A stretch of 64,000 nucleotides of DNA, from contig NC_135667.1 of NCBI RefSeq assembly GCF_964188315.1, forward strand, positions 18,972,001 through 19,036,000, in the 5' to 3' direction. Source of the stretch: Podarcis muralis. Lineage: Eukaryota. Of this stretch, positions 9,299-44,484 are shown one piece after another. The position numbers were made by a program, and so were the translations under genes. Within the stretch, counting starts at the first letter, position 1, and every line of letters starts with the position of its first letter. The notes below the pieces were generated by a model. That model searched no databases. It was not told the origin of the DNA and worked only from the letters and a program-made list of their open reading frames with translations.

Positions 9299-9345
<47 letters not shown>

Positions 9346-9873: not shown

Positions 9874-9904
9874 ATGAAGTTCTCTTTCAGCATTTTCTTC
9901 CTGG
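9874..9904 (+). CDS. Leader exon 1 ([10 protein letters not shown] + G), LRC-type
   Basis: ATG AAG TTC TCT TTC AGC ATT TTC TTC CTG G followed by donor gttagt; 31 nt, phase 1, hydrophobic. Confidence 0.65.
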
Positions 9905-11912
9905 GTTAGTATCACTGATGATCAGTGCAGTGGCTGGGTGGGAGGACCAGAGACCCAGCTTTGGTTCCTGCTGTTCAGATACCTTTTTATTAATAGAATC
10001 CTCTCCTTTCCAGAATGGTGGCTGCCTGGTCAGAGACAAGTACTTGGAGTTGAGTATCAGCAGATAAGAGAATATTAATTTGGGAGGGTAGTGGGATGGG
10101 ACAAAACAGGAGCTTGGTGCCATGGCCTCCCTTTCTCCCAAGGCTGTTTTTCTGACATAACTGGTTCTGCAGCTCCACCCAGCTTTCCCTCTGCTCGACC
10201 TTTATAGGTTTGGCATATCCGTCGGCTCCTGCCAGAGCAGATGCTTGCTTCCAAACACAGTTCTGAGTGCTTTACTGCCTTTCAAATTTTGCGCCATTGC
10301 TACCATACCTAGGGGAAAGCAATGAAGCGGGTCAGGATGCAGGACTCCAGGGAGCTCCAAGTGGGCAATCTGTTCCAGTGGAGGTTGAAAGCAAATGGAG
10401 CATTTTAGGGATTCTTTCCACAGACTGTCTCTCCCAGGCGCTACACTCTTGTGGAGAGTGGGAACTCTTATCTAGTTTTAGCTCTGCTTAGTCTTTGTAT
10501 ATTTGCAATTTACACCATAAAGCACCCAAAATGAGTGTTGGGTATTCTCCAGCTTTTGCATTCTTTGTTCTCCTGAGATTTCCAACCCTGAAGATTTCTT
10601 CCAGTTTTCCAGCCAGAGCTGGGAAGGAGCACGTTCTAAAGAGTTGATAGACAGGAGCAGCAGCAAGGAAGAGAAAGTGGGGAGACTCTTTATGTGGGTC
10701 AGGAACTGAACCAGGAGGGTGACATTGTTCATATTTGACATCAATTCCATGACTTATGTAGGCAAACCCAAGTAAAATATAGACCACTGTTTCTCAAATG
10801 ATGGGCTGGGTGCCCTCTGTGGGCTTTAGGCTGCTTTCAGACATGCCTTGGTCCCCAGTGACTCTTCAATCCCCAACAGCTCCCCCTTTGCCATGTATGA
10901 GGTTCTGCTGTCTGTGTTCATGATATTGTACAACTACTGATTATGGTAAACTTGTATGTGATGGTATGTATTGTGCAAAATGTGTAGGCAAGTATATTAG
11001 GTCAATCAGGGGGAAATTGTGTGATTGTGATGTTGGAAGTGAGTGGCGATTGGATAGGAGTTTTGAAAGAGAGTTGAATACTGGGGGGGTATTATTTTTG
11101 TCTGTTATTATGGTGTGTATTTTTTGCTTTGAGACGCAGGTGGCGCTGTGGGTTAAACCACAGAGCCTAGGACTTGCCGATCAGAAGGTTGGCAGTTCAA
11201 ATCCCCACGATGGGGTGAGCTCCCGTTGCTCGGTCCCAGCTCCTGCCAACCTAGCAGTTCGAAAGCACACCAAAAAGTGCAAGTAGATAAATAGGTACCG
11301 CTCTGGCGGGAAGGTAAATGGTGTTTCCGTGTGCTGCTCTGGTTTGCCAGAAGTGGCTTAGTCATGCTGGCCACATGACCCAGAAGCTGTACGCCGGCTC
11401 CCTCGGCCAATAAAGCAAGATGAGCGCCGCAACCCCAGAGTTGGCCACGACTGGACCTAATGGTCAGGGGTCCCCTTTACCTTTACCCTTATACTTTGCT
11501 TTTATATTGTAGACCACCCTGTGATCTTCAGATGAAGGGTGGTATAGAATTTTAATTAATAATTATAATCATAGTAATAATAATTGACCAGCCGTGCTAG
11601 AGGTAGTCATCATTCAGGAGCTTTGTATAGGCAGTGAAAATATAGATGATTTAAAGCACCTAGCAGTAACCCAGCTATGGGCTGTACCCCTTAGAGAAAA
11701 GATGATACAGGAGAGTTGAGTTGAATCAATGGGTGGTGCTGGCCTGAGTATGGCAATCTCAAAGATACCAGCTGAAGCCACAGGAACATTGACAGTATAG
11801 ATGACACAGTTTCCTCAAGCCTAGTTGAGGTGAGGGTGAGTGATTTTCCTAGAAACTGTAGCTAGGGAGGAAAAGTTTATTGTAGTTTCCACAGAGGCCC
11901 TGTCCAATAAAA

Positions 11913-11959
<47 letters not shown>

Positions 11960-14900
11960 AGTGTTAAAAAAGATAAAACACATGGAGCCATCAAAGGGAA
12001 TGCTATCTACCTTTCCAGTTCTGCGTGAACCCAGCACTTGTTCCTGAGAATCTGCCACCTAAATTGGAGATATAGCTCCAAAAATAGCACCCTCCCTCTT
12101 GAGCTGAAAAATGAAGAAATTTCTGCCCAGTACTCAGTCTCTATTGAGGAAAATTAAAAGAATGAAGACTTCTCCATCAAATGGCTAATCATTTAGGGAA
12201 AATCCAGACTGGAAGGGTTTGGAATAAATGAGTCCAGTGCTCTTTTTAAAAAGGGGGTACCCAAGGGTACGCAGTACTGGCACCTCTGTTATTATTGTTG
12301 TTACAAAGTGTGGCGCTTAGTATAACAACTTCATGGTGAGTACCAGCACCTATTTTTCGGGGGGGGGGGGGGAGGACTGAATAGTTCAATCTAGTGAGGA
12401 TAACCATTTTGGTCAGAGCTAGTCTATCCATTAGAGCAGTGTTTCCCAACCTTGGGTCTCCAGCTGTTTTTGGACTACAACTCCCATCATCCCTTGCTAG
12501 CAAGACCAATGGTCAGGGGTGATGGGAATTGTAGTCCAACAGCAGCTGGAGACCCAAGGTTGGGAAACACTGCATTAGAGTGAAATCTTCTGGTTTTCAT
12601 CTCATAATATCCTTGCTGGTTGTTTCCCACAGTTTTTAAAAATTGCACTTAAGGAATCGAATTAAGTCTCACTGGAATATGTTTTATACCCAGGTTGAGT
12701 GTGTGCAACCAGTGGAGGGGGAAAGTCTGGATTATCATTGCAAAGAGCCACATGCAGGACCAGAAGGATTTCCCCCCCCCCCCTTGTTGTTGTTTCTTCT
12801 TCCTCCTCTTTTGTTTGTTTGTTTTGCCAATTTTCCCCAAAACAAAAACAAACAAACAGAAAGATATTTTCCAGCCAGCAAGACAGTTGTCACTGTTGAA
12901 TGGTTTCTTTAAATTTGAAGGTTCATTATTGTTCCACAAGATGTGTATGTCTTTAAGGGCCAAAGCAAATAACGTGACTTAGTTTTACAGCTGTGAAGCA
13001 GTATAGCAGGTGCTTTTAAGTTGTGTTAATTAAGCTGTGTCAGCAATTGGGTATAGTATATAAAGAGCTCTCTCAGTACCCTGGTGGTTGGGTCATGCTT
13101 ATTGCTATATTATAATGTAGAAGGAGTTTTTGGTTTTGTTATTAAAACCTAGCAAAAGTTATTTTGAGTTCCTTGTAATGTGTGGTCTCCCCAGCAAGCT
13201 CTCTGCAGCGCAACCACCGTATTTTTCGCCCTATAGGACACACTTTTCCCCCTCCAAAAATGAAGGGGAAATGTGCGTGCGTCCTATGGGGCGAATGCAG
13301 GCTTTCGCTGAAGCCTGGAGAGCGAGAGGCGTCGGTGTGCACCAACCCCTCTCGCTCTCCACGCTTCAGGAAGCTATCTGCAAGCCTTGCGCGCACGGTG
13401 GGAGGTCCCGCCGGGCGCGCGAGGCTTGGGGCAGCAGCCTGCAGCCCGAAGCATAGGCGCCCTCCAGAGGATGCCCCGTGCTTCGGGCAGGTGTCCGCAA
13501 TCCTTGCGCTCCCGGGGGGAGGTCCCGCCGAACGCGCAAGGCTTGGGGCGGCAGCCTGTTCTTGGGGCGGCAGCCTGTTCTGGGAAGCTTGGGCTCCCCC
13601 CCCCCCAGCCCTGTGGCTGGGGGGGGGGGATAAATTTTTTTTATTCATTCCCCCCCCCCAAAACCGAGGTGCGTCCTATGGGCCAGTGCGCCTTATAGGG
13701 CGAAAAATACGGTAATCTGCAAATAGCCAACAGTCACGGCCCTTTATCCTCCACTTTTTCTTTCCTGGTGCTATTTTAAAAATTGCTATAGGTGGGAAGA
13801 AATCTCATCTGACTTGCTAACTGGTTCTCTGAACTTGGGTTTGCCCAGGTGTGGTGCTGGACTCATCTATTGCAGAAGCGGGACAGCTGGAGATTAGGCT
13901 GGTGAACGGTACAAGTCATTGCAATGGAATGGTTGAATTTCTCCATAATGGCCAATGGGGCACCATTTGTGATGACGACTGGGGCATCGAGGAAGCCACA
14001 GTTGTGTGCCGACAGCTAAGATGTGGACCTGCAATATCAGCCACACTTGAAGCACAATTTTGGGGGGGAACTGGACCCATCTGGCTGGATGAGGTCCGAT
14101 GCTCAGGGACAGAATCAGAACTCAGTCAGTGTCCTGCAAGCAACTGGGGAGAGCATGACTGCACACATGAGGAAGATGCTGGTGTTGTCTGCTCAGGTAA
14201 GTTGATCACTTATGTCAAGCCCTGTTTTGTTTGCTTTTTACATTGTCATGTGCATTATCATGTACATTAGAGTTGCCAATTGACCAGATAAATGTATCCT
14301 GAATGAATCCTGTGCCTTTTAGGCCAGCCTGATATGCAAGATCTTGCAAGTGGAGCTTTTCATTGGCTGGAAAGAAGCATAATTACCTCGCAAAGCCTAC
14401 ATGACCAATTGCTTTTAAAACCCCAAATCAGAGACCAGTAATAAAATTGTCAATCCCAGATGTGACCAAGTCTTCCCAAGATTAATTTACTAGCTACTTT
14501 CTAGATGGTGATTTTTTTTCTTTTGGAAGTATTGTTTACAGGCAAAAGGAGAATGAGGGGGCAGCTGGCTCTCTGAAGTCATAAATAAATACAAGCACTA
14601 TGCAAGCCCTGCCCACTGATGCAGTTGGAGTCTAGGCTTGGCAATCCAAATTCAGATTCTGAACTCCAAATCTTCAGAACTGCCATTCACTCCCATTCAC
14701 TCTTTTGGTCATAACTTTTGTTTTTACACTTCTGAGCATTAAATTTGGAGAAACTGTAGTTCTTCAATATGGAATTAACCCCAAGAACAGTCAGAAACAG
14801 CCCCAGGGTTGATGTTTTGTTTTTTTAAAAATCAGTTTTCATTAAAGATGTTCTTGTGTTACAAAACAATCAAATAAACAAGGAAAAGTACATATTGCAC

Positions 14901-17900
14901 CTCTGTTTTGATTCATATTTACTCCCTTAAATCAAATATAAAAAACATTACTGCTTTTCCCCTAGCCTCTCTTCCACTTTTCCAAGTCACCCCTTCAATC
15001 TGCCTGAATTCTCAAAGCAAAAAGCCTGCCTTGCAGGAAGAAGGACTATAATTAGCCTTATGGCTTGTCCCTTTATCTTATCCACTGTCCTGCTTTCAAA
15101 ATGATCATGCAGAAGAGAACTACATCTTGTCTCATGTGCTACCTCACTCTCTGGAATTTGCTTTCCTCAGGCATGACATTAGATTCAGATGCTGAAGACT
15201 CAAGTCAAGTGGAAATCAGGCTGGTGAATGGTTCAAATCACTGCAGGGGAAGAGTTGAATTGCTGCATAATGGCCAGTGGGGCACAGTATGCGGTCACTA
15301 CTGGGACCTTGAGGATGCCAGAGTTGTATGCCGGCAGTTGGGCTGCGGAGATGCAGGATCAGCCCTACAGAATGCAGAATTTGGAAGAGGCACTGGCCCC
15401 ATATGGCTGGATGATGTCAGATGCACAGGGACAGAATCAAATCTCTATCAATGCCCCAAAATGCTATGGGGAGAACATGACTGCAGACATGAGCAGGATG
15501 CAGGTGTTGTGTGTTCAGGTGAGTTCATAAACTATGAATTGATCCTACATGTTGGTTTTCACATTATCAGGATTTATTTCAAATATTTACAGCCTGCTCT
15601 TCATGGCTAAGAAGGCATCTCAAAGCAGATTACAATTCTGAAAAACGAAAGGAAAAACCCAACATTAGTAATAATAAAGCATAATAATAGGGAAAGTGAG
15701 ACCCTAGAATACTTTAAAAGATAAAAAAACCCATAACAAGTCAAAACAGAAGAAAAATTCCATGTGTATGTGTACATATGTCAGGAAATCATCCAATCGT
15801 CTTGAAACAAGGTAACAGATGTTTATTTTATTATTTTATTTTATTATTTCTTTAAAATATATTTTCACACATACTGATTCCAAAATGGTGCTTATTCCAA
15901 AATAAACATGCTTATGGGCAGAAAAGGTAAACTTTGGCCTCCACCAGACAGTCCCTGGGTTTTTCAGGTTGGATTCAACCACATACTGGCAAATTTAGGC
16001 TGTGAAATTAAATCTGAGTGGGAGAGGTTGTGCCACCCCCACCCCCCGCCAAAGGATCAGACTTTTTGCCATGAGGAGAATAATGGAAGAATGCACTGGG
16101 TAGTTTGAGATGTCATCCAGCTTTCCCTCAAACCAATCAGCATCACTGCTCAATAAACAAGTCCGTCAACCCAATCAGGGTTGGAAAACTGCCATTTGCT
16201 TGTTTTGTTCTTCTTGCATATCAGGAATGTAGAAGCAGATGTAAAGCATGGAATAGCAGGGGCGGGGTGGGTGAGTGGAGAGAAACACTGTGTGATTCAT
16301 AACTGATTGCAGAAGGGTTGGCAGATGTATGTCCATGGTCTGAAATTACCAAGCTTCACCAGTGATAAATATGGTTCTTTGGCATATGAAAGACCTTTAA
16401 ACAGTTTGACTTCTTTTTCTCCCACTCAGTCCTGCAGGTACATTGGCATGGAGGAATGGCTCCACCAACAGACTTCAGCCAGGATAGCTCATTGTAACCT
16501 CCACAGTCAGAGGCAGGATACTGGGCATTTAAGACAAAGAATATAGGATGGTCACCACTGCTATGTGGGGCTTGTGAGCAGCTAATGGCATCTAGAGGCT
16601 GTGGGTGGTCTTATCTGGCTGATCTTACCCAGCAAGCTAGTAGTTATGCCCTTTTAAGCTATCCTGATGCTACTTTCAACATAATTGCACAAAGGACAAC
16701 TTACCACTCCTCTTACCCACTATCCTGAATTTGCTTCACCCAGGTCTGAAGGATTCAACAGAGATTGCAGGTTTAGGCCCCTTGGAAATCAGGCTGGTGG
16801 AAGGTCAAAGTCGCTGCAGTGGAAAGGTTGAAATTTTCCTTAATGGTCAATGGAACATTGTTTGTGACGATGGCATGAATATTGAGAAAGCCAGAGCTAT
16901 ATGCCAACAGCTAGACTGTGGAGATGTAATCCTGTCTACAAAGGAGGAACGATGGAGAAAAAGAACTGACTTTATCACACTAAGAGACAGCATTTGCGCA
17001 GGAACAGAATCAGCCATCCATCAGTGCCAAGGAAGGCTTTCAAAAATCTTAAACCCGTGTCAATATGCTGTTCTTGTGTGTTCAGGTAAGTTCATAAACT
17101 AAGGCTTGATTTGCACTTTCCCAGTCCCTGAAGGCAGCCAGTGCCAATGCTTTGCCAGACCTGTTCCTATTCTCACAACACAGACCATAATTGTTGTCAA
17201 AAATCATACAAAATCACATGATTTGGAGACATATAGAGGGGGAAGAGACTGAGGGCACAGAATTGTCCTTTATGGCAGGGCCGCCATCTTGCCCTCAGGA
17301 TCATGGGTGCCCACCACCGCAACATGCCTGCATCTTGTGTGTGTAATGTCACATGTTAGACTCTCAATGTTTCATTGCGTTTTTGGAGAGCTGCTCCTCC
17401 AAAAAAGTGATGCAAGGTTGTGCATGTGTGTGATGACACACATCTGTGTCTTCTGGCGGATCCTCTTCCTCCTCTCTGCCACCAGCAAGGCACCCTTTTT
17501 GTGGGGTGGGGCTCAGATGCCTCCGCGTCCGAGGCCACCTCCCCTCCTGGAAAAGGGTGACTCACTGACTGGCTGCGGAGGGCAGAGCTGAAAGACTTGT
17601 CTCGGAGGTGTCGCTGCAGAGGCTGGATGGCTGCCCCTCTCCGGCTTTGCTCATTGACTTTGTGGGTGCCCAGCCTCCCACCCCAACCCATCCCTGGAGT
17701 TGGCACCTATATGGCATTTTAGGGGAAACAGGGAGCCAGCAAGACTGCAGGCAAAACTCCCAAAGGGGAAAGTTCTCGTGGAATACGGTTGAAGAGAGAT
17801 CTGACAAATAATGAAGCTAGAGATCTAAGAGGGAAGAACCACCATGAATTGCCATTCTTGAATGAAGCACTTGCAGAAAACATTTCTTGGCCTTCTGTAA

Positions 17901-27937: not shown

Positions 27938-27981
<44 letters not shown>

Positions 27982-28174
27982 TGTTATAAATTCTTTTCCT
28001 AATCTTTTGTTTATTAAGACTCTTCTGTGTTTTTTGCAACATGTATTTCCTGAAGACAAATTATATCCAAATTTTGTTTTATTAAAACGTGTTCTATTTT
28101 ATTTCTTTTTAATTGATTATTCAGTCCATTAACATTCCATGTCAAACGTTTTGAATCCATTCTTCCAATCTTAT

Positions 28175-28219
<45 letters not shown>

Positions 28220-31200: not shown

Positions 31201-34200
31201 GTGTGGAATTTATATGTATGATTCTCCTCTATTGCTGCAGTATCTCCTCACACGCTGGTGTTTGTGCCGAATCAGTCCCAAAGTCATTTCGCTGCTGGCA
31301 GACGCCATCTTCTCCCAGTTCTGATGAAATCAAATCTTGGCCTTTGCTCATTAATTTTCCCAGACTGGTTGCATCAAACATTAGCCTTTGCAGGGGAGAT
31401 TTACCAAATCATACTTGAAATACAGATATAATGACATATTAAGAGCTCGCCTCCCCCTATAACTATTTATAACTCTGCAGCTCGGTCTTATTCCATCATG
31501 GCAGATGTCCAATTTAAAAAGTGCGTCACATCTCAACTTTCTAGGAACCCGTCCAAAGTTTTTTGAAGTCTCTCCAGCGGTTAACGAGATCCTGCTTCTT
31601 TCTAAAATCAGCAATTGGAGAATCTTTTATCTTCTTCCAGGCAATTCAAAAAACAAAAGCTGTAATTATATAATATTGTTATTTCCACACAGTTTATATC
31701 AAAATTCTGGAAATTGGGGTGGGTGGGTGTCAAAATGAATATTTAGCTTAGTACAAGGATATTTTTAAAATGAAAACGATGCCCCTCTAGTGAGAATCAA
31801 CAGACAAATATCTATCATTGTTGAAGAAGTGACCAGTTTCAGGCATGACTTCCAACAAAACAATTCAATAGATTCTGTTTCGATGAGCTCTGATAACTAG
31901 GGGCAATAAAAAGGAAGGATGAGGAATGTGAGAGGTGGAGATATAAATCTGTCTTTTTTCACACCCAACAGAGATCAGATTGGTGGGTGGTTCAAATATT
32001 TGCTCTGGGAGATTTGAGCTGTTCTACAACTGGGATTGGATCCCCCCATGTGAAGACAGTTTGGACTGGAACAGTGTCCAAGTCATGTGCCGGCAACTTG
32101 GCTGTGGACCCTTCCTGTCAGGATCATCATCAGCTGTTGAATATAGACCAAGTTTTCTGCCAGCAAAAAAATTCACCTGTGAGGGAACAGAAGCTTCTCT
32201 CAACTACTGCCAAGGAAGATATGTCTCTAAAATGATGTGCTGGCCTTCCTATGCACGTATTGAATGCTCAGGTAATATTAATTTCCTCGTTTGTTTTTTT
32301 ATTCTGTTTAAAACTCACTTCCTATGAAATGTCTCAAATCATTACAGTAATCAAAACAATGAAAATGTTTATGTATAAAACAATTATAGTATATTCGATT
32401 AATAAAGCAATTCAGTATATAAAAAAATTTCAAATCCAATACAGGATTTAATGTTTTAATGTTGAAAAAAGAAAGACTTTAAATGTTGAAAAAAGAAAGA
32501 CTTTAATAGGCACCAAATAGGCAATAGAGATGGCGCCTGTCTGATACGTCACAGGAGGAAGTTCCAAAGGGTGGGTTCCACCAGGCTGAAGGCTTTGTTC
32601 TTATGGACCTCCTGATCAGATGCTGTCTGCAGGAGACCTTCTCCCAGAGAGTGCAGTGATTGGGTGGGCATGTAAAGGGTGAGGTGATATCGCCTAACAT
32701 GTGCCCTCTTGACCACTTCAGTTGGTGGAATTGGCACTATTACAGGTGCCACATAATACCCATTCTGCATCTGTAAGTACTCAATTGTTTAGTGTGGCAG
32801 TGTCTCCCTGCCTATTGAAATCCAATTGGCGCCTTCACTGTTCTCTTTCCAGTGCCTGTTAAAAACACTTTTGTTCAGACAAACCTACCTAGGTGCTTAG
32901 AAATGCTGGTGGGAATTTTAATCTGTTTGAGTCTCTTAGGTTTTGTAGGTTTTTGATGTGTTTCATTTTTTCCCTGATTTTATACTTTTATCTCTTTGTA
33001 AACCACTTTGAAGTTTTGTACACTATAAATTTTATGAAATGAATGAATGAATGAATGGTCATGGAAATGCAGCTCATTCTAGGTAGGATCTTTTGTTGTT
33101 GTTTAGTTGTTTAGTCGTGTCCGACTCTTCATGACCCCATGGACCAGAGCACACCAGCCACTCCTGTCTTCCACTGCCTCCCGCAGTTTGGTCAAACTCA
33201 TGCTGGTAGCTTTGAGAACACTATCCAACCATCTTGTCTTCTGTCGTCCCCTTCTCCTCATGCCCTCCATCTTTCCCAGCATCAGTGTCTTCTCCAGGGA
33301 GTCTTCTCTTCTCATGAGGTGGCCAAAGTATTGGAGCCTCAGCTTCATGATCTGTCCTTCCAGTGAGCACTCAAGGCTGATTTCCTTCAGAATGGATAGG
33401 TTTGATCTTCTTGCAGTCCATGGGACTCTCAAGAGTCTCCTCCAGCACCATAATTCAAAAGCATCAATTCTTCGGTGATCAGCCTTCTTTATGGTCCAGC
33501 TCTCACTTCCATACATCACTACTGGGAAAAGCATAGCTTTAACTATACGGACCTTTGTTGGCAAGGTGATGTCTCTGCTTTTTAAGAAGCTGTCTAGGTT
33601 TGTCATTGCTTTTCTTCCAAGAAGCAGGCATCTTTTAATTTCATGGCTGCTGTCACCATCTGCAGTGATCATGGAGCCCAAGAAAGTAAAATCTATCACT
33701 GCCTCCATTTCTTCCCCTTCTATTTGCCAGGAGGGGATGGGCCTAGTGGCCATATCTTTGTTAGGTAGGATCTTTACCTGTCTTAGGGACGTGGGTGGCG
33801 CTGTGGGTAAAAGCCTCAGCGCCTAGGGCTTGCCGATCGAAAGGTTGGCTGTTCGAATCCCCGTGGCGGGGTGCGCTCCCGCTGCTCGGTCCCAGCGCCT
33901 GCCAACCTAGCAGTTCGAAAGCACCCCTGGGTGCAAGTAGATAAATAGGGACCGCTTACTGGCGGGAAGGTAAACAGCGTTTCCGTGCACGGCTCTGGCT
34001 CGCCAGAGCAGCGATGTCACGCTGGCCACATGACCCGGAAGTGTCTCCGGACAGCGCTGGCCCCCGGCCTATAGAGTGAGATGGGCGCACAACCCTAGAG
34101 TCTGTCAAGACTGGCCCGTATGGGCAGGGGTACCTTTACCTTTACCTTTACCTTTACCTGTCTTAAATAAACAGGCAAGGCCATAGATAACCAGCAAGAC

Positions 34201-37200
34201 CATCCTGTAGGTACCCCTTGATGTATTTAATTAATCCTGCAGCAGCAGGTTGGTACCTCCAGGTCAAAACTCCTGTGCCGATCAGTAGCAGGACTGCAGC
34301 TATGAAGAGCCGCTGGAGCCTAACCTAGCAAGATAGCAAATGAATAAATTAATACATTTATTCTGAGTGCGCTCTGCTGGAACATATCCGAACTCTTTTG
34401 TTCCCTCCCTCCTCCACCAATCAATCCCCTTTTCTCCACTTCACTTTTGTTCTGACTGTATTTCCCACCACAGTACACTATGGCACTACAAATTGCTATG
34501 ATGCATTGCTGATTGTTCTTCTTCTTTTTATTGTTTTTATTGATTGATTGTATTGTTGAGAAAAACAGAAACCAGAACTGAAAAGTTAAAAAGCCTTTTT
34601 CAATCTCTGTAGGGATCAGATTAGTGAATGGTACAAACCGCTGCTCTGGGAGAGTGGAGGTGCTCCACAACCAGCAATGGCTGACGGTGTGTGAAGATGG
34701 CTGGGATCTAAACAGCGCCCAGGCTGTGTGCAGGGAACATGTCTGTGGGGAAGCCTTGTTTGTCCCAAGAGGAGCTCCCTTTGGAAGAGGATGTGGTGCC
34801 ACCTGCTTGGCTGGAGCCAAGTGTCGGGGGATGGAATACAGATTTAAGGACTGTGACCTACACTGGGAAACACATAATTGCAGTCATGGAGAAGATGCTA
34901 GTGTTGTCTGCTCAGGTAATTCTAGGTTGAGAGAAACTGGCAATACGTTCATCTTAATTACTACTATCTTTCCTAATAATGATAAATTCCTTCTTCCGCA
35001 TATTTCTAGATTCCTTTTTATTTTGTTCCAATTTTTTTCATAATTGTCTTTTAAAATATTTATATTTTTGGTTGTTAACCAGACCCCCAAATATGTGATT
35101 TTTTTAAATGGATCTCTATTTCTACATTTTGTTGTAATTCTATTTTATCTTCTCTTGCTAATTTCTTTACTAATAATTTTGTTTTATTTTTATTCAGCTT
35201 AAATCCTGCCACTTGCCCAAATTCCTGTATTTTCTCTAATACCCTCAAAAGGGAATTTTTAGGATCTTCCACCATAATTACAAGGTCATCTGCATATGCT
35301 TTAAGCTTATATTCCTTTTCCCCTACCATAATTCCTTTAGTCTTATTATCTGCCCTGATATTTCTCGCCAGGACTTCCAAAACCAAAATAAATAAAAGAG
35401 GTGATAGGGGATATCCCTGATTTGTTCCTTTCTGTATTTTACATTGCTCTGTTACCACCTGGTTCACAATTAATTTGGCTTTTTGATCAGAATATATAGA
35501 TTAAATCCCTTTCCTAAATCTCACCCAAAGTTCATCACTTCAAGAACTTTTTTTCATAAAATCCCATGAAACATTATCAAATGCTTTTTCAGCATCTATA
35601 AACATCAGGACCGCTTGGAAGGGAGGGATATTAGTCCTTTTTTTGTACACCACTTTCTAGATTTTATGTTGTAGAACCAGGCACAACTTTAAATTGGCTG
35701 TAACTGCCAAAATCTTTCTTTATTAGTATTTGCCAATACAGCAAGTGAACTCTGTAAGAACAATTCTTCTTCCTCTGGGCTCCAGTTCTCCTCTTTCCCT
35801 ACATTCTTGCCTTTTCTTTTTTGGTTTCAAAAGTGGTGACTGAACTGACACTTGACTAATTTCATCCAATAGCCAAGGTTTGAATATCTTGCAAGTCTAA
35901 CATTCCAGAAACATCATTATTTCAGCAGCATCTCGGGAATCAGCTTCTTTTGTGCTCATCCACTATACATTCTCATTTATATTCAGTAACATTATCTTAA
36001 TTTGACCGGATTTTGCATCAGCAAAAAGGAATAATGGCACATTTCCAGTGGTGATGATTGTGTGCAGCAGAATGCATGTCGTATCTCCATAGCCCCATTC
36101 TTTTGCCATGAAAGTAGGCAGGTTTGCTCTGCCAATTAGGCCAACAGAAATCTATTTAAACATTTTGAGGAAGACTTCAATTTTGAAATTCAGGATATTA
36201 AAAGCTTATTTTTCCTCATTGTTTTCTTGAAAATGCTTTGCCATTGTGGTTAGTTGCATTGGCACACTGGTCCAGGACCATATTCCCTCATAATACAGTG
36301 GAACCTCGGGTTACATACTCTTCTGCTTACATACGCTTCAGGTTACGGACTCCGTTAACCCAGAAAAAGTACCTTGGGTTAAGAACTTTGCTTCAGGATG
36401 AGAACAGAAATTGTGCAGCGGCGGCACAACGGCAGCAGGAGGCCCCATTAGCTAAAGTGGTGCTTCAGGTTAAGAACAGTTTCAGGTTAAGAACAGACCT
36501 CCAGAACGAATTAAGTTCTTAACATGAGGTACCACTGTACTTCTGTGGAAAGCAGGTGTATCTGAAAGTCATGTTCTCTCAGAGATGGTGTTTTTTTCAG
36601 CATGTTGCTCTGCAAGTAGAGAGGACACGCCCTTCCAAGGGATATGACTTCCAGATAGAGCATCTTTCCACTGATGTATTCTTGGGGGAAATGGCTCTGG
36701 GGTCTTTTGGGGATGCTTCCACCACTTGCTGCAATGGGAAGAACAAGTTAAAGTTGTGTGTGCGTGTGTGTGTAAAAGAAGTAAGGAGAAGAGAAATATA
36801 TTCAATCCTGCATTCTGAAATATAGGACCCCTTCAAATTTTAAAGTAATGGTCTTCAGCTGACCAAAGGTGATGGCAGATCTGGACTCCATAGATAGCAC
36901 CCTGTGCTTGTCAGGCGCCTCCTCCTCCGCTGTGCACCCACCACTGCGTTCCCACTCACTCCCAACACCCACTTTCCGTCTTCTGTTTTCCCTCTCCTCC
37001 CACCATCCCATTTCCTCTCTCCATTTAGCCCCCCTTGCTTTATCACAGCTTTTCTTCTCCCTGTTCTATGGCATCTCACCTTCTCGTATTTTCCATACCT
37101 TGATACCCACAGAGTCTTGCTCAAATTCCATGCTGTGTTTGCAGCTGCTTCTTGATGGACAGGCTCTCTGCTTTGCAAGAGAGCAGCTGCGGCCTCCAAA

Positions 37201-40200
37201 CAGTAAGCCATGCTGCAAAGGCAAGAGAGAGGTTCTGCTAGGTTGGCAGAATGGAACGAGGAGAAGTGTTTTGGAGGGTCCGAGAAAGGGGGTCAGATGA
37301 GCACTATCCCACCACCACTTGCCAGTTCAGGAAAAGAGAAACTCCAAGAGGGTGCAAAGCAGGACTGGAGAGGTTTGGAGGGCTGCATTTGGTCCCTAAA
37401 TCTGATATTCCCTATCCATGCTCTAACCTAGAACCCTTAACATTTCCCATGGAATAATAATCATCATCATAATAATAAATTTTATTTATATCCCGCCCTC
37501 CCCAGCCAAAGCCGGGCTCAGGGCAACTAACAACAATAAAATAGTACAACATTCTAAAATCATTTCATTCTAAAATTAATTCAACTCAAATTGATGGCAA
37601 CCATTAGGCTAAAGTTCTGTGAAGATTGCCAAAGGAGGGAGTCAGGCTGTGCCCTGACCAAAGGCCAGGCGGAACAACTCTGTCTTGCAGGCCCTGCGGA
37701 AAGATTTCAAGTCCCGCAGGGCCCTGGTCTCTTGTGACAGAGCGTTCCACCAGATTGGAGCCACAGCCGAAAAAGCCCTGGCTCTAGTTGAGGCCAGCCT
37801 AACCTCTCTGTGGCCTGGGACCTTCAGGATGTTTTTGTTTGAGGACCGTAAGTTCCTCTGTGGGACATACCAGGAGAGGTGGTCCTGTAGGTACGAGGGT
37901 CCTAGGCCGTATAGGGCTTTAAAGGATGAAACCAGCACCTTAAACCTGATCCTGTACTCCACCGGGAGCCAGTGCAGCTGGTATAGCACCAGGTGAATGT
38001 GATCTCGCAGCGAGGACCCCATAAGGAGTCCCCATAAGGAGTCTCGCCACGGCATTCTGCACCCACTGGAGTTTCTGGGTCAGTCTCAAGGGCAGCCCCA
38101 CGTAGAGCGAGTTACAATAGTCCAGTCTGGAGGTGACCGTCACGTGGATCACAGTGGCTAGGTCAGGGCGAGAGAGGTAAGGAGCCAACTGCTTAGCTTG
38201 GTGGAGATTAAAAAAAAGGCCGCCTTTGTTATAGCTGCAATCTGCGCTTCCATGGAAAGATTACACCCAAACTCTTAACGGACGGTGCTGGCAGTAATTG
38301 CGCCCCCACAAGAGATGGGAGTTGCCCCCTAATCCCATATCGTCCCTTCCCAGCCAAAGGACCTCTGTCTTCGAAGGAAGCTACAAAAAATGAGGAATTG
38401 GGAGGTGGAGGCACAAAATGGACTCTAACCATTTTAAACCCTACAGATATCAGATTGGTGAATGGTACAAGCCCTTGCTCTGGAAGAGTTGGGGTGTTCA
38501 ACGCCGGGCAGTGGGGGACTGTGTGTGATGATGGTTGGAATCTGAGCAGCGCCCAAGTCGTGTGCAGGCAACTTGGATGTGGGGAAGCCTTATCAGTCAA
38601 AGTAGCAGCTCACTTTGGGAAAGGCAATGGCTCCATCTTGCTGGATGAGGTCAGATGCAAGGGGACAGAAGCTACCCTCCGCCACTGCCACCTACAGCCT
38701 TGGGGAGAACATAACTGTGTGCATGAAGAAGATGCTGGTGTTGTATGCTCAGGTAAAAATTACAATTAAGAAATAGTCCTTATCGTGTTTTAATCTCGTA
38801 TTGTTATGTTGTGAACTGCTCTGAGATCTACAGATGAAGAGTGGTATGCAAATTTAATATATAAATTAATTAGTAGGAGCTATGCAGTTGGGTTAGAGGG
38901 ATGCAGGTGGCGCTGCGGGTTAAACCACAGAGCCTAGGACTTGCCAATCAGAAGGTCGGCGGTTTGAATCCCCGCGACAGGGTGAGCTCCCGTTGCTCGG
39001 TCTCTGCTCCTGCCCACCTAGCAGTTCAAAAGCATGTCAAAGTGCAAGTAGATAAATAGGTACCGCTCCGGTGGGAAGGTAAACGGCGTTTCCATGCGCT
39101 GCTCTGGTTCACCAAAAGCGGCTTAGTCATGCTGGCCACATGACCTGGAAGCTGTATCCCGGCTCCCTCGGCCAATAAAGCGAGATGAGCACCGCAATCC
39201 CAGAGTCGGCCACAACTGGACCTAATGGTCAGGGGTCCCTATACCTTTTATACAGTTGGGTTAGAAACTTGTATACAAGTTGAATCAGCATGCCCATTTT
39301 GTCATCAACACATGTCCTTCAGCTCTGCTGGTGATAATCATATCAATGGAAGCAGGAAAGACCCTCTGTCTGCGTTTTCTTCCCCTCCTCTTTTGCACAG
39401 TCTTTCCTTCGCTTCATATGCACCACATTAAATAGGTTCAAACCATAATTTGTGAGGATTTTATGCAACATTCTGGCCTCTTCTCCATCTTTGTTATCCG
39501 TACTGTGTAGGAGAGCAGCTGAGCTTGCATCTTATTAATTTTATCTATCAGTAGACTCCGTTTCAGTCGAAGCTATTTCTCATCTCAACAGAGATCAGAC
39601 TGGTGAACGGTACAAGCAGCTGCTCTGGAAGAGTTGAAGTGCTCCACAACTGGCAGTGGCTGGCTATGTGCGATGACAGATGGAATCTGACCAGTGCCCA
39701 AGTTGTATGTAGAGAGCTTGGATGTGGTGAAGCCTTGCTGGCTGCAGGAGGAGCTCACTTTGGAACAGGAAATGGTCCCACCTGGTTGTCTGGTGTCAGT
39801 TGTCAGGGGACAGAAGTTGCCTTCAAGGACTGTGACTTACAGTGGAGAACACATGATTGCAGCCATGGAGAAGTTGCCAGTGTTGTGTGCTCAGGTAATA
39901 GCTATACTGTGGCCTTGGAAACTGGCTGCAAGTTCAACTAGTAAGTCTATTTTGCCAATAGAAAGTTGCTGAAGAGTTCTGATGCTGATAGTTGTGCTGG
40001 GAGGAGGAGGAAGAAGGGCAGTTCACAATATAATTTTCATTCTGTGTCATTTTTGCTTTCTCTAGAAACAAAACAAGTGTCCCAATGCCGTTCTAGCTTT
40101 CTAGATAAGCACTAGGTGTGAGTAACATTCCCTAGAGGAGTTCTAAATCCAAACGACGTTTGATGTCCTTCATAGCCATGGCATCATGTCTGGAGCTGCA

Positions 40201-43200
40201 TGCTCCTATACCTTTAAAGTGAATCCAGTGCACATTCTTGCCTGCAAGGAATTCTGGGCACTGTAGTTTACCCTTCACAGAGTTACACTTATCACCAGCC
40301 CTTACCAAACTACAGTGCCCAGAATCCTGGTATCTGGTGCCTTTAAATTCAACATTTCTCTCTCTCTTCCCACTTTCTACTCCCCATCTATTGATCAGCA
40401 AACATAGCAGAGCAGTTGGGTTGAACCCACGAACTGGCACTTCATTAAACATTTTCTGTTGGTGGAAAGAAGAGAGGAATGGCAAATTAAACCGATGGAC
40501 TATGCCGAAATGACAAAACTGACTGGAAAGCTCAGGAACCAAGAGGACAAAGCATTTAAAAAAGAACGGGGGGAATTTACAATTTATTTAGAAGACCACT
40601 GTAAGCAGATGAAAACATTAGCAGGATTTTAATCTTACTTGTGCTGTAACAAATACTATGGATAATATGGATCATTTAAAATATAGATTATGAAATGATA
40701 TGCAGTAGAAAATGTTTATAATAGGATCCATGGAGGAGATGGGAGGAAGTCTCAAGATTCAGAGAAATCTCTTCTTCAAATTTGGTTTTGTTATGAATTT
40801 ATATTTGCAAAATCAAATAAAAAATTATTTTGTTTAAGAAAATCTGTTTAAACAAGCCTATTTAAAGATGTAATGCTGACGTGTGTTTTTAATATCCATG
40901 TTAACATTACATATTTTATTTAATCTCTGTTTAATGGTAACTTTTATTGATAATTTCAACGTATATTCTTATTCTGATCAAGGGCTTTCAAATAACATTA
41001 AATAAAGTATAAATGAATGAATGAAACTTACAGAATCAGAACCTGAGGCTTCCGAGGTGCAGAGTGGGGCTCCCAGGATGCCTTAGGTTTTAGCCCCTCT
41101 CATTGCATAGGGAAAGCATTAGTTGGTGACAATAGCAGGCCCAGGACTCCCAATTCTTAACCCTTCTCTTTAACAAGCAAGATTCAATGCCACATATTTG
41201 TTACTATGTTCAACTCTGTCTCATCAGAGCTTTCACGTTTAGTTATTTTTTTGTCCCATCAGAGCTCCGCCTAGTGAATGGCCCAAGTCGCTGCTCTGGG
41301 AGGATTGAGGCGCTGCACAACCGCCAGTGGGGGACTGTGTGTGACGCTGGTTGGGATTTGCATGATGCTCACGTTGTGTGCAGGGAACTGGGCTGTGGAA
41401 ATGCCTCCAAAGCATTTGGTGGAGCATGGTTTGGACAAGGATCTGGTCCCATCTGGCTGGAGGGAGTCAACTGTACAGGAGAAGAAGCTTTCCTGAGTGA
41501 GTGTTCCCAAAGTCCCTGGGGAGAGCACAGCTGCAACCACAGCCAGGATGCCAGTGTGGAGTGCTCAGGTAATTTTGCAAGATAAGTTGTACTTGATGAA
41601 CCCAATAGGGGGGTTTAGATCTTTGAGATCACTGAAGTTAGGATCAGATTCTTAGTTTATTACTATCATCTTAAAAGAGCATCTTTAAAGTCTGGGGACA
41701 CACTGGGGGTTATTGTTTTGTTTTTTATTCTGCTGTGTATTTTTGTGTGTTTATACTATAAACCACCCTCTGATCCTTTGGGTGAAAGATGGCATGGAAA
41801 TTCATTAAATACATAAATACGTACGAATACCATTGGCCCAATCCATTCCTCAGCAGGAAAACTGTGAAAGTTTGTAGGTCGTAAATCCTTTGACCCACGA
41901 AGTCTGCCATCCAGCACTTCAGTTAGCCTGATTTACGAGCTGGTCCGATGTTTATGGCCACCCACACGCTTCTTCTGCGCGCTGCTGTTGTCGTTGCAGA
42001 GTTCGTACGCAGCATAAATGGCTTGGTCTGTGTCAAAGTGGTGTCTTCAATAACTCAACTTGACACCAGTGCTTCTATTCTACCAAAGGTGTTTATTCGG
42101 AAGCATAAACAAACAGGAAATAAACCGACAGAATCGAGCTGCATGCTTGCAGCGTTCTGTCTCTCACAAAAACAAAACCAACTCTCAGAGACTCAGTAAC
42201 TCTGCTGAACAAAAAGAAAAATGCCTGGATAATATGGGCAGGCACCCAGTGAATAAGAACGCCTCTGGGAATGTTAACTCTAAACTGTCCAGAACCACAA
42301 CTGTAGTGGTTTGGAGTTACTCGTGCGTAAGCCGACCCCATTTGGGTGCTTGGTTGCCTGATTAAACCCTTCGGACTGCACAGCCCATCTCCGCTTGACT
42401 GCCTCAGTCACTGGCAGAATCTGTCTGTGGGCGTTTCTTAAACCTCTGCCAGCATAAAAGCTGTTTGACACCTAATCGTCTCCGCCTCTCATTGCGCGGG
42501 AGTCTCCTGCGCAGGGTGGGCGTGGGTAGCGGAGTGCCTGGGCTCTCTTCACTGACTTCCAGGGAAGAATCCCGGAGCCCTTCCACCTCCTCTTCCCCTT
42601 GCTCTCCTGGACTCTTGGTGTCACGCGTATTTCCTTCCCCTTCCACCAAGCTGAGTCTCCCCCTTGTGCTAGGACCTTCACCTGCAGAATCTGAGACCCT
42701 CTCCTTCTCCCGTGTCTCTGATGTCAGTTCCCTGACAACAACAAAAAACCTACTGTGTGATCAGCCAGATCTCACCGGGAGAATCCACGACCAGAAAGAA
42801 GAGGAATACCAAGAAGACTGGAAGAAATTTAAAGACTATTTGAATAAATATTGTAATATTAAAGATATGTAATCACTTGAAAGAATCAATTAGGCCTAGG
42901 ATTAACTTGTGATTAAATAAATAAGAAAATGTATGATAAGGAAAGTTAGGAAATATGATTATGACTGTGATATGGTTTTATGAAATGATATTGGAAACTG
43001 CTATACAGTGGTACCTCGCAAGACGAACGCCTCGCAAGACGAAAAACTCGCAAGACGAAAGAGTTTTGCATTTTTTGAGTTGCTTCGCAAGACAAATTTC
43101 CCTATGGGCTTGCTTCGCAAGACGAAAACGTCTTGCAAGTTTGTTTCCTTTTTCTTAAAACCGTTAATACCCAGGGTGCATTGCTTGAAGAGGTGCCGTT

Positions 43201-44481
43201 GCGTGCTTCACAAGACGAAAAATTCGCAAGACGACAAAACTCACAGAACGAATTAATTTCGTCTTGCGAGGCACCACTGTATATAATTACTGAGAAAGAT
43301 GGAAGAGATTTGAGGAAGTCAAGTAATATGTTTAGGAAGATGGATTTTGATCAATTAATTATGTTTTAGTTTATGTGGTGATTTCATGTATTTTAGGTTT
43401 TGTGATCTTTTTTCTTTTTCTTTTTCCCGTTTCATTCTTTCTCCTTTATTATCATTGGCTTTTTTTCTGTTATGTTTATGTATGGAAAATAATAAATATT
43501 ATTGGGGGGGGGACTGCACTGTGTTCATGATTCCCAAGAAGGCCCTGGGGACACCATTCTGCCTTCCTCCTGCTCCATGTTAAGTTGCTGGGTAGGAGCA
43601 CAGGAAAGTGCCTTAGACAGGTTGAGACCATTGGTCCATCTATCTCAGTAGCGTCTACACTGACTGGCCATAGCTGTCCAAGATTTCGGGAGAGGTTCTC
43701 TCCCCATTTTACCTGCAGATGCCAGGGATTTGACCTGTGAGCTTCTGCATGCAAAGCAGATGCTCTACCCCTAAGCTATGTCCCCCAAACAAGAGGAGCC
43801 ATGGAAGCAGTTAACAGATTAGGGAAAACAGACCCAAGCATGTCCTACTGCGATCAGGCTGTGCACAGGGCTGTGTTTCCTTGGGACACGACTAGTTAGG
43901 AAAGCAAGGCTGTGCACCAGGTTAACTCAAATTCTGCAATAATAGTTATCCCCAACTGCACCTGCAATTCTCTGCTAAGTGGCAAGACCACATAGGTCCT
44001 ACTGGATTTACTGTATTGGCCCGAATATAAGCCGCACCTTAATATAAGCAGCACCTTTAAATTTTAAGTGGGGGGGGGGAGAGAAAAAACAGTACCCGCA
44101 TATAAGCCGCCACCTCTTCAGGCACTCACACCCATTCTGTTTCAGCATCAATATTGTAAAAGCCAATTTTTGTAAGGTCGCAATTTAAGCCACACTTTAA
44201 CTTTTCATGGTCAATCACAAAAAAACAACTGTGACTTCCTGCACTAGTTTGTGGGCATATAGAGGAAAACAAAATAATGCAAGAGTGAAAAGTGAGCAGT
44301 TTGCAGGAGCCTCGGTTTTTTATTTGCAATGAATAAGTGACAGTGTCTTCCTTCTCCTGCTTTTACAGGGGACGCATCTGTCGAGGGCAACATCCGCCTG
44401 GGAGTGTCTGCCTTGGTCTTGCTTGTGTTGGTGCTGATCATGGCTGAGGCTGTGTACAGCTGGAGGAGAGGGCAGCTTTAA
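9874..44481 (+). CDS. Predicted multi-exon type I membrane receptor: split leader + 13 group-B SRCR domains + Arg-containing TM and short tail (about 1448 aa if all exons are used)
   Basis: All exons are on the plus strand with phase-1 junctions. Every SRCR exon length is a multiple of 3 with AG/GT boundaries. Exon lengths 31+36+348+348+342+348+306+336+306+315+300+303+306+303+306+113 = 4347 nt. Joining them into one transcript is inference. Confidence 0.7.
10014..10049 (+). CDS. Leader exon 2, 36-nt mini-exon ([12 protein letters not shown]); canonical donor appears mutated
   Basis: Acceptor ctctcctttccag after a 109-nt intron; 36 nt phase 1-1; followed by TTGAGT rather than GTGAGT. Confidence 0.55.
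11131..11488 (+). mobile_element. Sauria-type SINE
   Basis: tRNA-like head ggtggcgctgtgggttaaacc, core gtgcaagtagataaatagg, (ACCTTT)n tail. Confidence 0.9.
12437..12572. mobile_element. hAT-type MITE
   Basis: Long TIRs CAGTGTTTCCCAACCTTGGGTCTCCAGCTG; 8-bp TSD CATTAGAG. Confidence 0.9.
13217..13712. mobile_element. Tc1/mariner-type (CCGTA-terminus) MITE with GC-rich interior
   Basis: TIR CCGTATTTTTCGCCCTATA / TATAGGGCGAAAAATACGG, followed by TA. Confidence 0.82.
13849..14196 (+). CDS. SRCR exon 1 (group B, 8 Cys)
   Basis: cccag/GT...TCAG/gtaag; 348 nt; EIRLVNG..C.G.VE...[39 protein letters not shown]. Confidence 0.93.
15171..15518 (+). CDS. SRCR exon 2 (8 Cys)
   Basis: ctttcctcag/GC...TCAG/gtgag; 348 nt open frame with SRCR consensus. 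Confidence 0.93.
16744..17085 (+). CDS. SRCR exon 3 (8 Cys, divergent)
   Basis: cacccag/GT...TCAG/gtaag; 342 nt; [25 protein letters not shown]. Confidence 0.88.
17954..21185 (-). mobile_element. Full-length RTE/BovB LINE in the intron between SRCR exons 3 and 4, frameshifted
   Basis: BovB 5' end (CTTCATGGATCACTGCCTTG), EN ([13 protein letters not shown]) and RT ([10 protein letters not shown]) in several frames, (CAA)n tail, 9-bp TSD ACTATGATT at 17945-17953 and 21186-21194. Confidence 0.93.
21578..21925 (+). CDS. SRCR exon 4 (8 Cys)
   Basis: gacccag/GT...TCAA/gtaag; 348 nt; close paralog of exon 2 including intron flank. Confidence 0.92.
23961..24266 (+). CDS. SRCR exon 5 (8 Cys)
   Basis: ttccatcag/AG...TCAG/gtaag; 306 nt open frame. 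Confidence 0.92.
24367..24703 (+). mobile_element. Sauria-type SINE
   Basis: Same family; flanked by an imperfect direct repeat tatatcca(g/a)ttctg. Confidence 0.9.
25494..25829 (+). CDS. SRCR exon 6 (6 Cys; FEDY x3 repeat)
   Basis: ccaccag/AG...TCAG/gtaat; 336 nt open; weak polypyrimidine tract, so the 5' boundary is less certain. Confidence 0.8.
25765..25800 (+). repeat. Coding tandem repeat (TTTTGAAGACTA)x3 in SRCR exon 6
   Basis: Three perfect 12-mers encoding [12 protein letters not shown]. Confidence 0.95.
26250..26430 (+). mobile_element. BovB 3'-end fragment
   Basis: gggacgacagaggatgaaatggttggacagtg...gactaaacaactaaaaacaacaac matches the 3' end of the element at 17954. Confidence 0.8.
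27092..27397 (+). CDS. SRCR exon 7 (8 Cys)
   Basis: ccccatcag/AG...TCAG/gtaat; 306 nt; paralog of exons 5 and 13. Confidence 0.92.
27700..29290 (-). mobile_element. Degenerate L1-clade LINE 5' part (ORF1 and start of ORF2 endonuclease), with CA/TG microsatellites inside
   Basis: [18 protein letters not shown] endonuclease motif; ORF1-like coiled coil and CRWEFPEG; boundaries approximate. Confidence 0.75.
29487..29621 (+). pseudogene. Decayed 3' half of an SRCR exon
   Basis: Translates as ..[27 protein letters not shown] with in-frame TAG at 29598-29600. No 5' half or acceptor is visible; it lies next to an L1 5' end. Start coordinate is approximate. Confidence 0.6.
29981..30295 (+). CDS. 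SRCR exon 8 (8 Cys)
   Basis: ctttacag/AT...TCAG/gtaac; 315 nt; [11 protein letters not shown]. Confidence 0.92.
30905..31720 (-). mobile_element. Probable L1-clade ORF2 3' fragment, heavily decayed
   Basis: AT-rich decayed coding-like sequence resembling the other L1 3' pieces in the window (40470-40830, 42770-43500); no clean ORF. Confidence 0.45.
31972..32271 (+). CDS. SRCR exon 9 (8 Cys, divergent)
   Basis: cccaacag/AG...TCAG/gtaat; 300 nt open; all 8 Cys retained although inter-Cys consensus is eroded. Confidence 0.85.
33094..33761 (-). mobile_element. 5'-truncated BovB LINE
   Basis: Near-identical to 17954-18620; 14-bp TSD TAGGTAGGATCTTT at 33080-33093 and 33762-33775. Confidence 0.92.
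33786..34152 (+). mobile_element. Sauria-type SINE, variant subfamily
   Basis: gggacgtgggtggcgctgtggg...(ACCTTT)n tail; TSD TTTACCTGTCTTA at 33773-33785 and 34153-34165. Confidence 0.88.
34613..34915 (+). CDS. SRCR exon 10
   Basis: tctctgtag/GG...TCAG/gtaat; 303 nt; paralog of exons 8 and 12. Confidence 0.92.
34935..35625 (-). mobile_element. L1-clade ORF2 RT fragment
   Basis: [36 protein letters not shown]. Confidence 0.85.
36296..36537. mobile_element. Tigger/pogo-type MITE
   Basis: TA-CAGTGG.ACCTC ... GAGGTACCACTG-TA. Confidence 0.82.
37453..38355 (-). mobile_element. L2-clade LINE 3' fragment
   Basis: [24 protein letters not shown] and [10 protein letters not shown] motifs; (AAT)n tail at about 37453-37480. 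Confidence 0.85.
38447..38752 (+). CDS. SRCR exon 11 (8 Cys, closest to consensus)
   Basis: ccctacag/AT...TCAG/gtaaa; 306 nt; [19 protein letters not shown]. Confidence 0.93.
38898..39252 (+). mobile_element. Sauria-type SINE
   Basis: 13-bp TSD CAGTTGGGTTAGA at 38885-38897 and 39253-39265. Confidence 0.92.
39592..39894 (+). CDS. SRCR exon 12 (8 Cys)
   Basis: ctcaacag/AG...TCAG/gtaat; 303 nt. Confidence 0.92.
41263..41568 (+). CDS. SRCR exon 13 (8 Cys)
   Basis: gtcccatcag/AG...TCAG/gtaat; 306 nt. Confidence 0.93.
41730..42737 (-). mobile_element. Probable Gypsy-type LTR (42031-42737) plus decayed start of gag
   Basis: TGTCA...TGACA termini on the minus strand and AATAAA inside; downstream [11 protein letters not shown] resembles a chromovirus/sushi gag motif; no TSD seen. 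Confidence 0.45.
43006..43279. mobile_element. Tigger/pogo-type MITE
   Basis: TA-CAGTGGTACCTCGCAAGACG ... CGTCTTGCGAGGCACCACTG-TA. Confidence 0.88.
44369..44481 (+). CDS. Terminal transmembrane exon [37 protein letters not shown]
   Basis: Strong acceptor cttccttctcctgcttttacag; phase 1 matches the SRCR exons; hydrophobic stretch bracketed by Arg and Glu; TAA at 44479-44481. Missing from the ORF track. Confidence 0.82.
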
Positions 44482-44484
44482 ATA

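Follow-up and report, generated by a model that had tools for sequence, protein, structure and literature searches.

The window analysed here is a 64-kb stretch of the genome of the lizard Podarcis muralis (OZ076966.1, assembly GCA_964188315.1, nt 18,972,001–19,036,000), and all coordinates given below are positions within it. It carries two FUT genes, FUT A and FUT B, the proteins of which have their nearest relatives in Podarcis, Lacerta and Zootoca. Between them lies a row of exons, all on the + strand, that probably represents a chimeric receptor gene. Its end exons are homologous to those of squamate LILRA-like genes, which have the plan of activating receptors of the leukocyte receptor complex (LRC), and the exons between them encode 13 SRCR domains in the place where LILRA-like genes carry immunoglobulin (Ig) domains. 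The features recognised are as follows.

9785–9873, + strand: proximal 5' flank and 5' untranslated region (UTR), homologous to Ig-type LILRA-like genes; aligns with the Rhineura LILRA2-like gene and with the LRC copies of Zootoca
9874–9904, + strand: leader exon 1, 31 nt, GT donor, phase 1; homologous to Rhineura, identical at 31/31 positions in P. raffonei and at 30/31 in Zootoca
10014–10049, + strand: vestigial LRC mini-exon, 36 nt, with T instead of G at donor position +1; recognised by homology and by comparison of donors
13849–14196, + strand: SRCR1 exon, long-linker type (PF00530 E 3e-35; splice sites)
15171–15518, + strand: SRCR2 exon (PF00530 E 3e-36; splice sites)
16744–17085, + strand: SRCR3 exon, divergent (PF00530 E 5e-20; splice sites)
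21578–21925, + strand: SRCR4 exon (PF00530 E 2.5e-34; splice sites)
23961–24266, + strand: SRCR5 exon (PF00530 E 7e-33; splice sites)
25494–25829, + strand: SRCR6 exon, 6 Cys and a FEDY repeat insert (PF00530 E 6e-21; alignment)
27092–27397, + strand: SRCR7 exon (PF00530 E 4e-32; splice sites)
29981–30295, + strand: SRCR8 exon (PF00530 E 6e-31; splice sites)
31972–32271, + strand: SRCR9 exon, the most divergent (PF00530 E 1e-15; donor)
34613–34915, + strand: SRCR10 exon, 10 Cys (PF00530 E 1e-23; Cys count)
38447–38752, + strand: SRCR11 exon (PF00530 E 1e-34)
39592–39894, + strand: SRCR12 exon (PF00530 E 1.4e-28)
41263–41568, + strand: SRCR13 exon (PF00530 E 8e-34)
44369–44481, + strand: terminal exon with a short connecting peptide, an Arg-bearing membrane helix, a 7-aa tail and a TAA stop; recognised by its LILRA-named matches, its invariant residues and the end of the annotated coding sequence (CDS)

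The SRCR exons occupy 13.8–41.6 kb of the window. A tblastn search with one SRCR domain recovered 13 of them, all on the + strand, and every one matches PF00530 in Pfam (E 1e-15 to 1e-36) and can be placed in group B of the SRCR family. Each has an open frame in phase 1-1, an AG acceptor and a GT donor (26 canonical sites for the whole array), with lengths ranging from 300 to 348 nt. A preliminary description of this DNA had listed 13 in-phase group-B SRCR exons, and in this respect it is fully borne out. The 8 cysteines of the group B pattern are present in 11 of the 13 domains, SRCR6 having 6 and SRCR10 having 10. SRCR6 carries a threefold FEDY repeat before its last beta strand and has lost two cysteines, while its frame remains open and its splice sites are kept; judged by the group B pattern, the two lost cysteines presumably formed one disulphide pair. 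Pairwise identity between the domains is 28–78%, and the array is therefore old. Joined to the end exons, it gives a complete open reading frame (ORF) both with the mini-exon (1448 aa) and without it (1436 aa). If SRCR13 were left unspliced, its frame would be closed by a stop 4 codons into the intron.

The nearest sequence relatives of SRCR13 are named SSC5D-like, DMBT1 or M130-like, and the organisation of the array, with one phase 1-1 exon per SRCR domain and the 8-Cys pattern, is also that of SSC5D, DMBT1 and CD163/WC1. DMBT1 differs in having CUB and zona pellucida (ZP) exons, neither of which is present in the window: the open frames from SRCR13 to FUT B gave no match to Pfam, and the same was true of the open frames in the flanking introns. 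Members of the CD163/WC1 family have their own membrane exon and an extended cytoplasmic tail containing signalling or endocytosis motifs. In the P. muralis gene, by contrast, the tail has only 7 aa, and no SRCR protein was among the search matches of the membrane exon.

This terminal exon follows a strong polypyrimidine/CAG acceptor and encodes GNIRLG...AEA..SWRRGQL before the stop, with the Arg near the outer end of the helix. As in LRC receptors, the membrane helix, which contains a basic residue, and a short tail devoid of signalling motifs (SWRRGQL in the window) are encoded together by one last exon. The preliminary description had recognised an Arg-containing membrane segment on a single terminal exon with a short tail, and this stands, the tail being about 7 aa rather than about 8. 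The motif N-x-x-R that it gave does not, as the sequence reads N-I-R; the squamate motif is N-x-R, one residue shorter.

When the 36 aa of the membrane exon were searched alone against 1.84 billion cluster representatives, four matches were obtained at E ≤ 0.001, and no SRCR protein was among them. The first (P0001), which is repetitive and probably of bacterial origin, is a spurious match. The second (P0002) is a protein of Rhineura floridana named LILRA2 by NCBI, in which one Ig domain is followed by the C-terminal sequence SSVENNIRLGVAGFVLLALALIVAEAIYSWRSGQL; it is 71% identical to the membrane exon and finishes with the same residues (C-terminal GQL). The remaining two are an unnamed Logan fragment (P0003) and a multi-Ig protein of Chrysemys picta named LILRA6 by NCBI (P0004). 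The Ig domains of P0002 and P0004 were confirmed by Pfam. The exon also matches the LILRA1 of Zootoca (P0256), which has two Ig domains and ESNIRLGVAGLVLLSLVLIVAEF. Identity to the LILRA-named proteins is 61–71%, and the residues that are invariant across the aligned membrane exons of the family (R, L, LL, LI, AE and S) are all kept in the window. The expectation that this exon, searched by itself, would find Ig receptors of LRC type is thus confirmed, the real matches being LILRA-named Ig receptors or an unnamed fragment. In the reverse direction, the open frame of SRCR13 was searched against a set of 5.8 billion proteins, and none of the 126 proteins fetched was an SRCR protein with the same membrane helix. 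A PDB sequence search with the membrane exon returned designed repeat proteins and NdhC only, and was uninformative. Homology between the start of the membrane exon (DASVE) and the ends of SRCR5 and SRCR13 was considered and rejected, because the codons differ, including AGT versus TCT for Ser. Directly after the stop codon lies a SINE-like element (44482–44700; SINE, short interspersed nuclear element) with relatives at 36292–36344 and in Zootoca (L005, approximately 8340–8540), and the first canonical poly(A) signal downstream of the membrane exon is at 45796.

At the other end of the gene, leader exon 1 (9874) is the sole candidate among ATG-started, hydrophobic, phase-1 first exons in 8800–13848, and like the membrane exon it occurs once in the window. 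The LILRA2-like protein of Rhineura (P0006) starts with MTFSFNIYFLG, matching leader exon 1. The longest Rhineura isoform has the N-terminus MTFSFNIYFLGWWLPWQ, with which the two leader exons of the window can be compared, the mini-exon side reading EWWLPGQ. In the DNA alignment with the Rhineura LILRA2-like gene, homology spans the 5' UTR through the mini-exon, and the leader and mini-exon also align with three Ig-type copies in Zootoca. The leader had been expected to match LRC-type Ig receptors, and it does so at both the protein and the DNA level.

The split leader of 31+36 nt that was described previously is present and homologous in both of its exons, but it is not intact, because the donor of the mini-exon has TT. 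This donor was compared between the SRCR-gene copies of three lacertids (P. muralis, P. raffonei and Zootoca) and four Ig-type copies (one from Rhineura and three from Zootoca): it reads TTGAGT in all of the former and GTGAGT in all of the latter. As TTGAGT is common to the three lacertids, it represents an old, shared G-to-T change at the invariant +1 base of the donor, and not an assembly slip. A 35-nt mini-exon using a GT one base upstream is ruled out by a stop at codon 41, and nothing convincing was found in 9905–13848 when an alternative mini-exon of 30–42 nt with a GT donor was sought. If the mini-exon is skipped, the frame from leader exon 1 to SRCR1 is kept, and the resulting N-terminus is a plausible signal peptide by the -3/-1 rule, on our own reading rather than that of a predictor. 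With the donor TT in all three lacertids, the mini-exon is probably not spliced in. It differs from P. raffonei at 3 of 36 positions, compared with 1 of 140 in exon 1 plus intron 1 and about 7% in the upstream flank; small as these numbers are, they fit a relaxed mini-exon beside a constrained exon 1.

No Ig exon or remnant of one was found in the 64-kb window by tblastn with Rhineura, Zootoca and turtle proteins. A second search, with a profile made from 11 Ig exons of these relatives, covered the six-frame translation of the full 64 kb; its best E was 2.2, against 1e-22 to 1e-45 at control loci, so that the Ig ectodomain typical of LRC receptors is missing here. The earlier remark that no Ig exon is visible therefore holds by both methods. 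In Rhineura, the related gene fits within 4.6 kb: exon 1 is followed after about 115 nt by a 36-nt mini-exon, and then come a single Ig exon and the membrane exon. No SRCR exon lies within 10 kb on either side of it. In Zootoca, a tandem array at 35.55–35.57 Mb of OY735914.1 (L011) contains at least three LILRA-like genes, each with a leader, 1–4 Ig exons and an Arg-bearing membrane exon. The NCBI model for the Zootoca protein P0256 is without a leader, though a leader is visible upstream in the DNA. Unlike these Ig-type genes, the P. muralis gene is situated inside a FUT cluster. The Ig-type copies are found 0.3–0.4 Mb from the FUT cluster in both Zootoca and Rhineura: in Zootoca this is the approximate distance to the FUT/SRCR locus, and in Rhineura a FUT gene is about 0.33 Mb away.

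Apart from the exons at 9874 and 44369, the window offers the SRCR array neither a leader nor a terminal exon of its own. This bears on an arrangement of two genes, in which an SRCR gene would be nested in the long intron of a functional, Ig-less mini-gene; the leader of the latter would be joined by splicing straight to its membrane exon, and the product would be a peptide of about 46 aa. Exon 1 and the membrane exon, both in phase 1, are indeed mutually in frame. Such an arrangement would nevertheless leave the array without its own leader and terminal exon in the window, and all three parts share the same strand and phase, so that two separate genes appear extremely improbable.

Because the Ig exon is missing and all of the exon phases fit, the best reading of the locus is a swap of Ig exons for SRCR exons on the chassis of an LRC activating receptor. 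We put the probability of this statement as a whole, including the predicted activating function of the lacertid receptor, at roughly 0.58, with more of that confidence placed on the architecture and less on adaptor coupling. The ancestral gene would have had a leader exon, a 36-nt mini-exon, one or more Ig exons and one exon for an Arg-bearing membrane helix and short tail, a layout that persists in Rhineura and in the Zootoca cluster. In lacertids, one copy of this small LRC-type activating receptor gene would have lost its Ig exon, and 13 phase-1 group-B SRCR exons of the SSC5D/DMBT1-like kind would have taken its place. Replacement of Ig by SRCR domains through phase-1 exon shuffling had been put forward in the preliminary description. 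The homology of the end exons, the loss of Ig and the phases all speak for it, but the dead donor of the mini-exon, and the fact that none of three annotated models has a demonstrable leader (see below), speak against it.

The predicted transcript would run from 9874–9904, spliced directly to SRCR1 at 13849, through SRCR1–13 and on to 44369–44481, with the mini-exon skipped because its donor is dead. Translation would give a protein of about 1436 aa, inserted in the membrane as type I and with a predicted signal peptide of 21 residues. Group-B SRCR arrays bind microbial surfaces, and by analogy with the family the array of P. muralis would bind microbial or polyanionic ligands. In LRC activating receptors, the signal peptide is spread over two exons and a single exon supplies helix and tail, including a basic residue through which FcεRIγ is recruited (PMC3601082); the common gamma chain itself goes back as far as bony fish (PMC4016189). 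From what is known of the family, the membrane Arg of the lizard protein would likewise pair with an adaptor of the FcR-gamma type carrying an immunoreceptor tyrosine-based activation motif (ITAM), and clustering by ligand would then activate the cell and not only drive endocytosis. That lacertids express a lineage-specific activating pattern-recognition receptor of this kind, in which the promoter, the leader and an FcR-gamma-docking membrane exon come from an LRC receptor and the ectodomain consists of 13 SRCR domains, is a more tentative proposal, to which we would give somewhat less than even odds.

The existing annotation goes part of the way towards this gene. In P. muralis, a gene call on the + strand has a CDS of 1142 aa that ends exactly at 44481, the stop of the membrane exon, and extends left past 37603; the SRCR exons and the membrane exon are therefore already joined in an existing model. 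It had been supposed that an automatic pipeline would probably miss the structure, and this is true of the leader, which was left out, but not of the whole, since the call ends at the membrane exon.

The 5' ends of the annotated models, together with several related observations, count against the gene as proposed. The P. muralis CDS stays above 12671, and its model is thus without the leader; the P. raffonei model (683 aa) starts inside SRCR1, after a deletion; and the Zootoca model (1100 aa) begins 8.4 kb upstream of the leader, at an exon that is not conserved. Use of the leader is demonstrable in none of the three lacertid models, and two are clearly without it. The model lengths of 1142, 1100 and 683 aa fit no simple exon set, and a search of protein collections with SRCR13 gave no spliced fragments from the same species. 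As for the membrane exon, the 36-aa query would miss SRCR proteins with more divergent LRC-type membrane helices. An attempt to rebuild the 1142-aa model from in-frame ATGs and up to 3 skipped exons gave no solution.

Such starts would be accounted for if the SRCR array and the membrane exon form one gene that begins at an unrecognised or non-conserved first exon, the LILRA-like leader at 9874 being a dead relic. The P. muralis CDS, which does not reach 12671 or below, the position of the Zootoca start and the mutated donor of the mini-exon are all compatible with this. However, exon 1 stands alone in 8800–13848 as an ATG-started, hydrophobic, phase-1 first exon; together with intron 1 it has changed less than the flank; and, spliced to SRCR1, it makes a good in-frame signal peptide. 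The peptide at the start of the Zootoca model, MGHMMLGLLNVE, is not signal-like and is without a counterpart in Podarcis. A relic leader is on balance improbable, and we infer that the annotated 5' ends are predictor patches and not transcript-based starts.

Comparison with other lacertids gives the chimeric gene an age. The leader region and the FUT A orthologue stand head-to-head in both P. raffonei (96% identity) and Zootoca (94%), and SRCR genes are annotated at the same place in both (683 aa and 1100 aa, respectively). Since the leader beside FUT A and the SRCR genes are found in P. raffonei and Zootoca, the arrangement predates the split between Podarcis and Zootoca. As a matter of genomic sequence, then, the chimeric architecture is real and older than this split, and an SRCR coding sequence of 4.2 kb that has remained free of stops and frameshifts in P. 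muralis over that time suggests selection on the ORF.

Other results of the same comparison weigh against a functional receptor. SRCR1 of P. raffonei (L006:4175–4517, orthologue of 13849–14196) has a 5-nt deletion and a Cys-to-Trp change, and the first SRCR domain may be in the process of being lost in that species. Over SRCR1–3, P. muralis and P. raffonei are separated by only 22 changes, counted as 15.5 non-synonymous and 6.5 synonymous; the resulting ratio of non-synonymous to synonymous change (pN/pS) of about 0.68 means that constraint appears to be weak. The 3' neighbourhood of the membrane exon has been rearranged in P. muralis when compared with P. raffonei, Zootoca and Lacerta. The FUT B orthologues of P. 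raffonei, Zootoca and Lacerta agilis (L007, L008 and L009), used as anchors from which to reach the membrane exon in other lacertids, have no membrane exon within 10 kb; each faces an inverted FUT copy 5–7 kb away, tail to tail. This copy is missing here in P. muralis, where the sequence from the membrane exon to FUT B is a patchwork of FUT-flank and receptor-flank remnants. Within it, 46234–46445 is a 74%-identical, same-strand copy of 9415–9640 (the 5' flank of the receptor) and 45000–45340 matches the sequence just past the FUT stop codon in Lacerta agilis. The former is what is left of a second copy of the receptor, the latter of another FUT.

The frameshift in SRCR1 of P. raffonei, the pN/pS of about 0.68 and the rearranged 3' neighbourhood, along with the splice-donor loss common to lacertids, the inconsistent model lengths between species and the in-frame stop 4 codons past an unspliced SRCR13, could also be taken as signs of a decaying locus. 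The leader and membrane exon would then be relics of an Ig receptor, the SRCR array would be a pseudogene or would encode a secreted protein ending just after SRCR13, and the membrane exon would have been added by the predictor. This is difficult to reconcile with 13 P. muralis exons that have neither a stop nor a frameshift and 26 canonical splice sites, despite their pre-split age. The cysteine framework is kept, the losses in SRCR6 falling on what we take to be a single disulphide pair, and in the membrane exon the ORF is unbroken, the acceptor is strong and none of the family-invariant residues has been lost. Moreover, a secreted form could coexist with a membrane form. A locus in decay is thus considered unlikely, and the chimeric receptor gene remains the preferred reading.

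Of the systems already known, the squamate LILRA-like genes (Rhineura floridana 'LILRA2', XP_061444826, and Zootoca vivipara 'LILRA1') share with the P. muralis gene a homologous 5' UTR, the 31-nt leader, the 36-nt mini-exon and the terminal exon with its N-I-R-L-G helix, AE motif and short tail. Its general plan matches that of LRC activating receptors such as CHIR-A/TILR-A, LILRA, OSCAR, FCAR and GPVI (PMC3601082). The P. muralis gene differs from the LILRA-like receptors in lacking an Ig domain, in having 13 SRCR domains instead and in the inactivated donor of its mini-exon. That exons can be shuffled between a family of Ig-type immunoreceptors and an adjacent group-B SRCR gene has a precedent in FCRLS of mammals, which is often mis-annotated as well (PMC7940838, PMC4016189). 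FCRLS, however, has retained its Ig domains, contains a single SRCR-like domain, is a member of the FCRL family rather than of the LRC, and has been described as a soluble mosaic (PMC7940838, PMC4016189), whereas in the lizard gene Ig domains are absent, the SRCR domains number 13 and the helix is of the activating type. No account of an SRCR array combined with an LRC chassis, or of LRC genes in squamates or reptiles, came up in the literature search.

If lacertids do express such an activating receptor, it would be the first in which an SRCR ectodomain is connected to an ITAM adaptor, and would offer a dated case from nature in which a whole ectodomain was exchanged within the leukocyte receptor complex. 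Should the gene be expressed as predicted, the activating chassis of the LRC (promoter, leader and Arg-bearing membrane exon) would represent a portable signalling module, onto which a different ligand-binding array had been grafted by phase-1 exon shuffling, linking scavenger-type pattern recognition to ITAM signalling. The case would be both dated and open to comparison, as Ig-type copies survive in the same genomes, the swap is common to Podarcis and Zootoca, and the loss of a splice site accompanies it. The annotated models differ in each lacertid genome examined and none demonstrably has the leader, so that catalogues of LRC or SRCR genes would misfile the gene.

Two minor features of the 5' half of the locus were also seen. 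The intron before SRCR1 includes a GC-rich, repetitive segment (13214–13713) that is open in several frames on both strands and has no counterpart in the P. raffonei orthologue. Between FUT A and the leader, 5569–8811 is occupied by a long interspersed nuclear element (LINE) with long open frames of reverse transcriptase type on the + strand (564 aa and 443 aa). This element is missing at the orthologous site in both P. raffonei and Zootoca, and is therefore a young insertion, located about 1 kb upstream of the leader.

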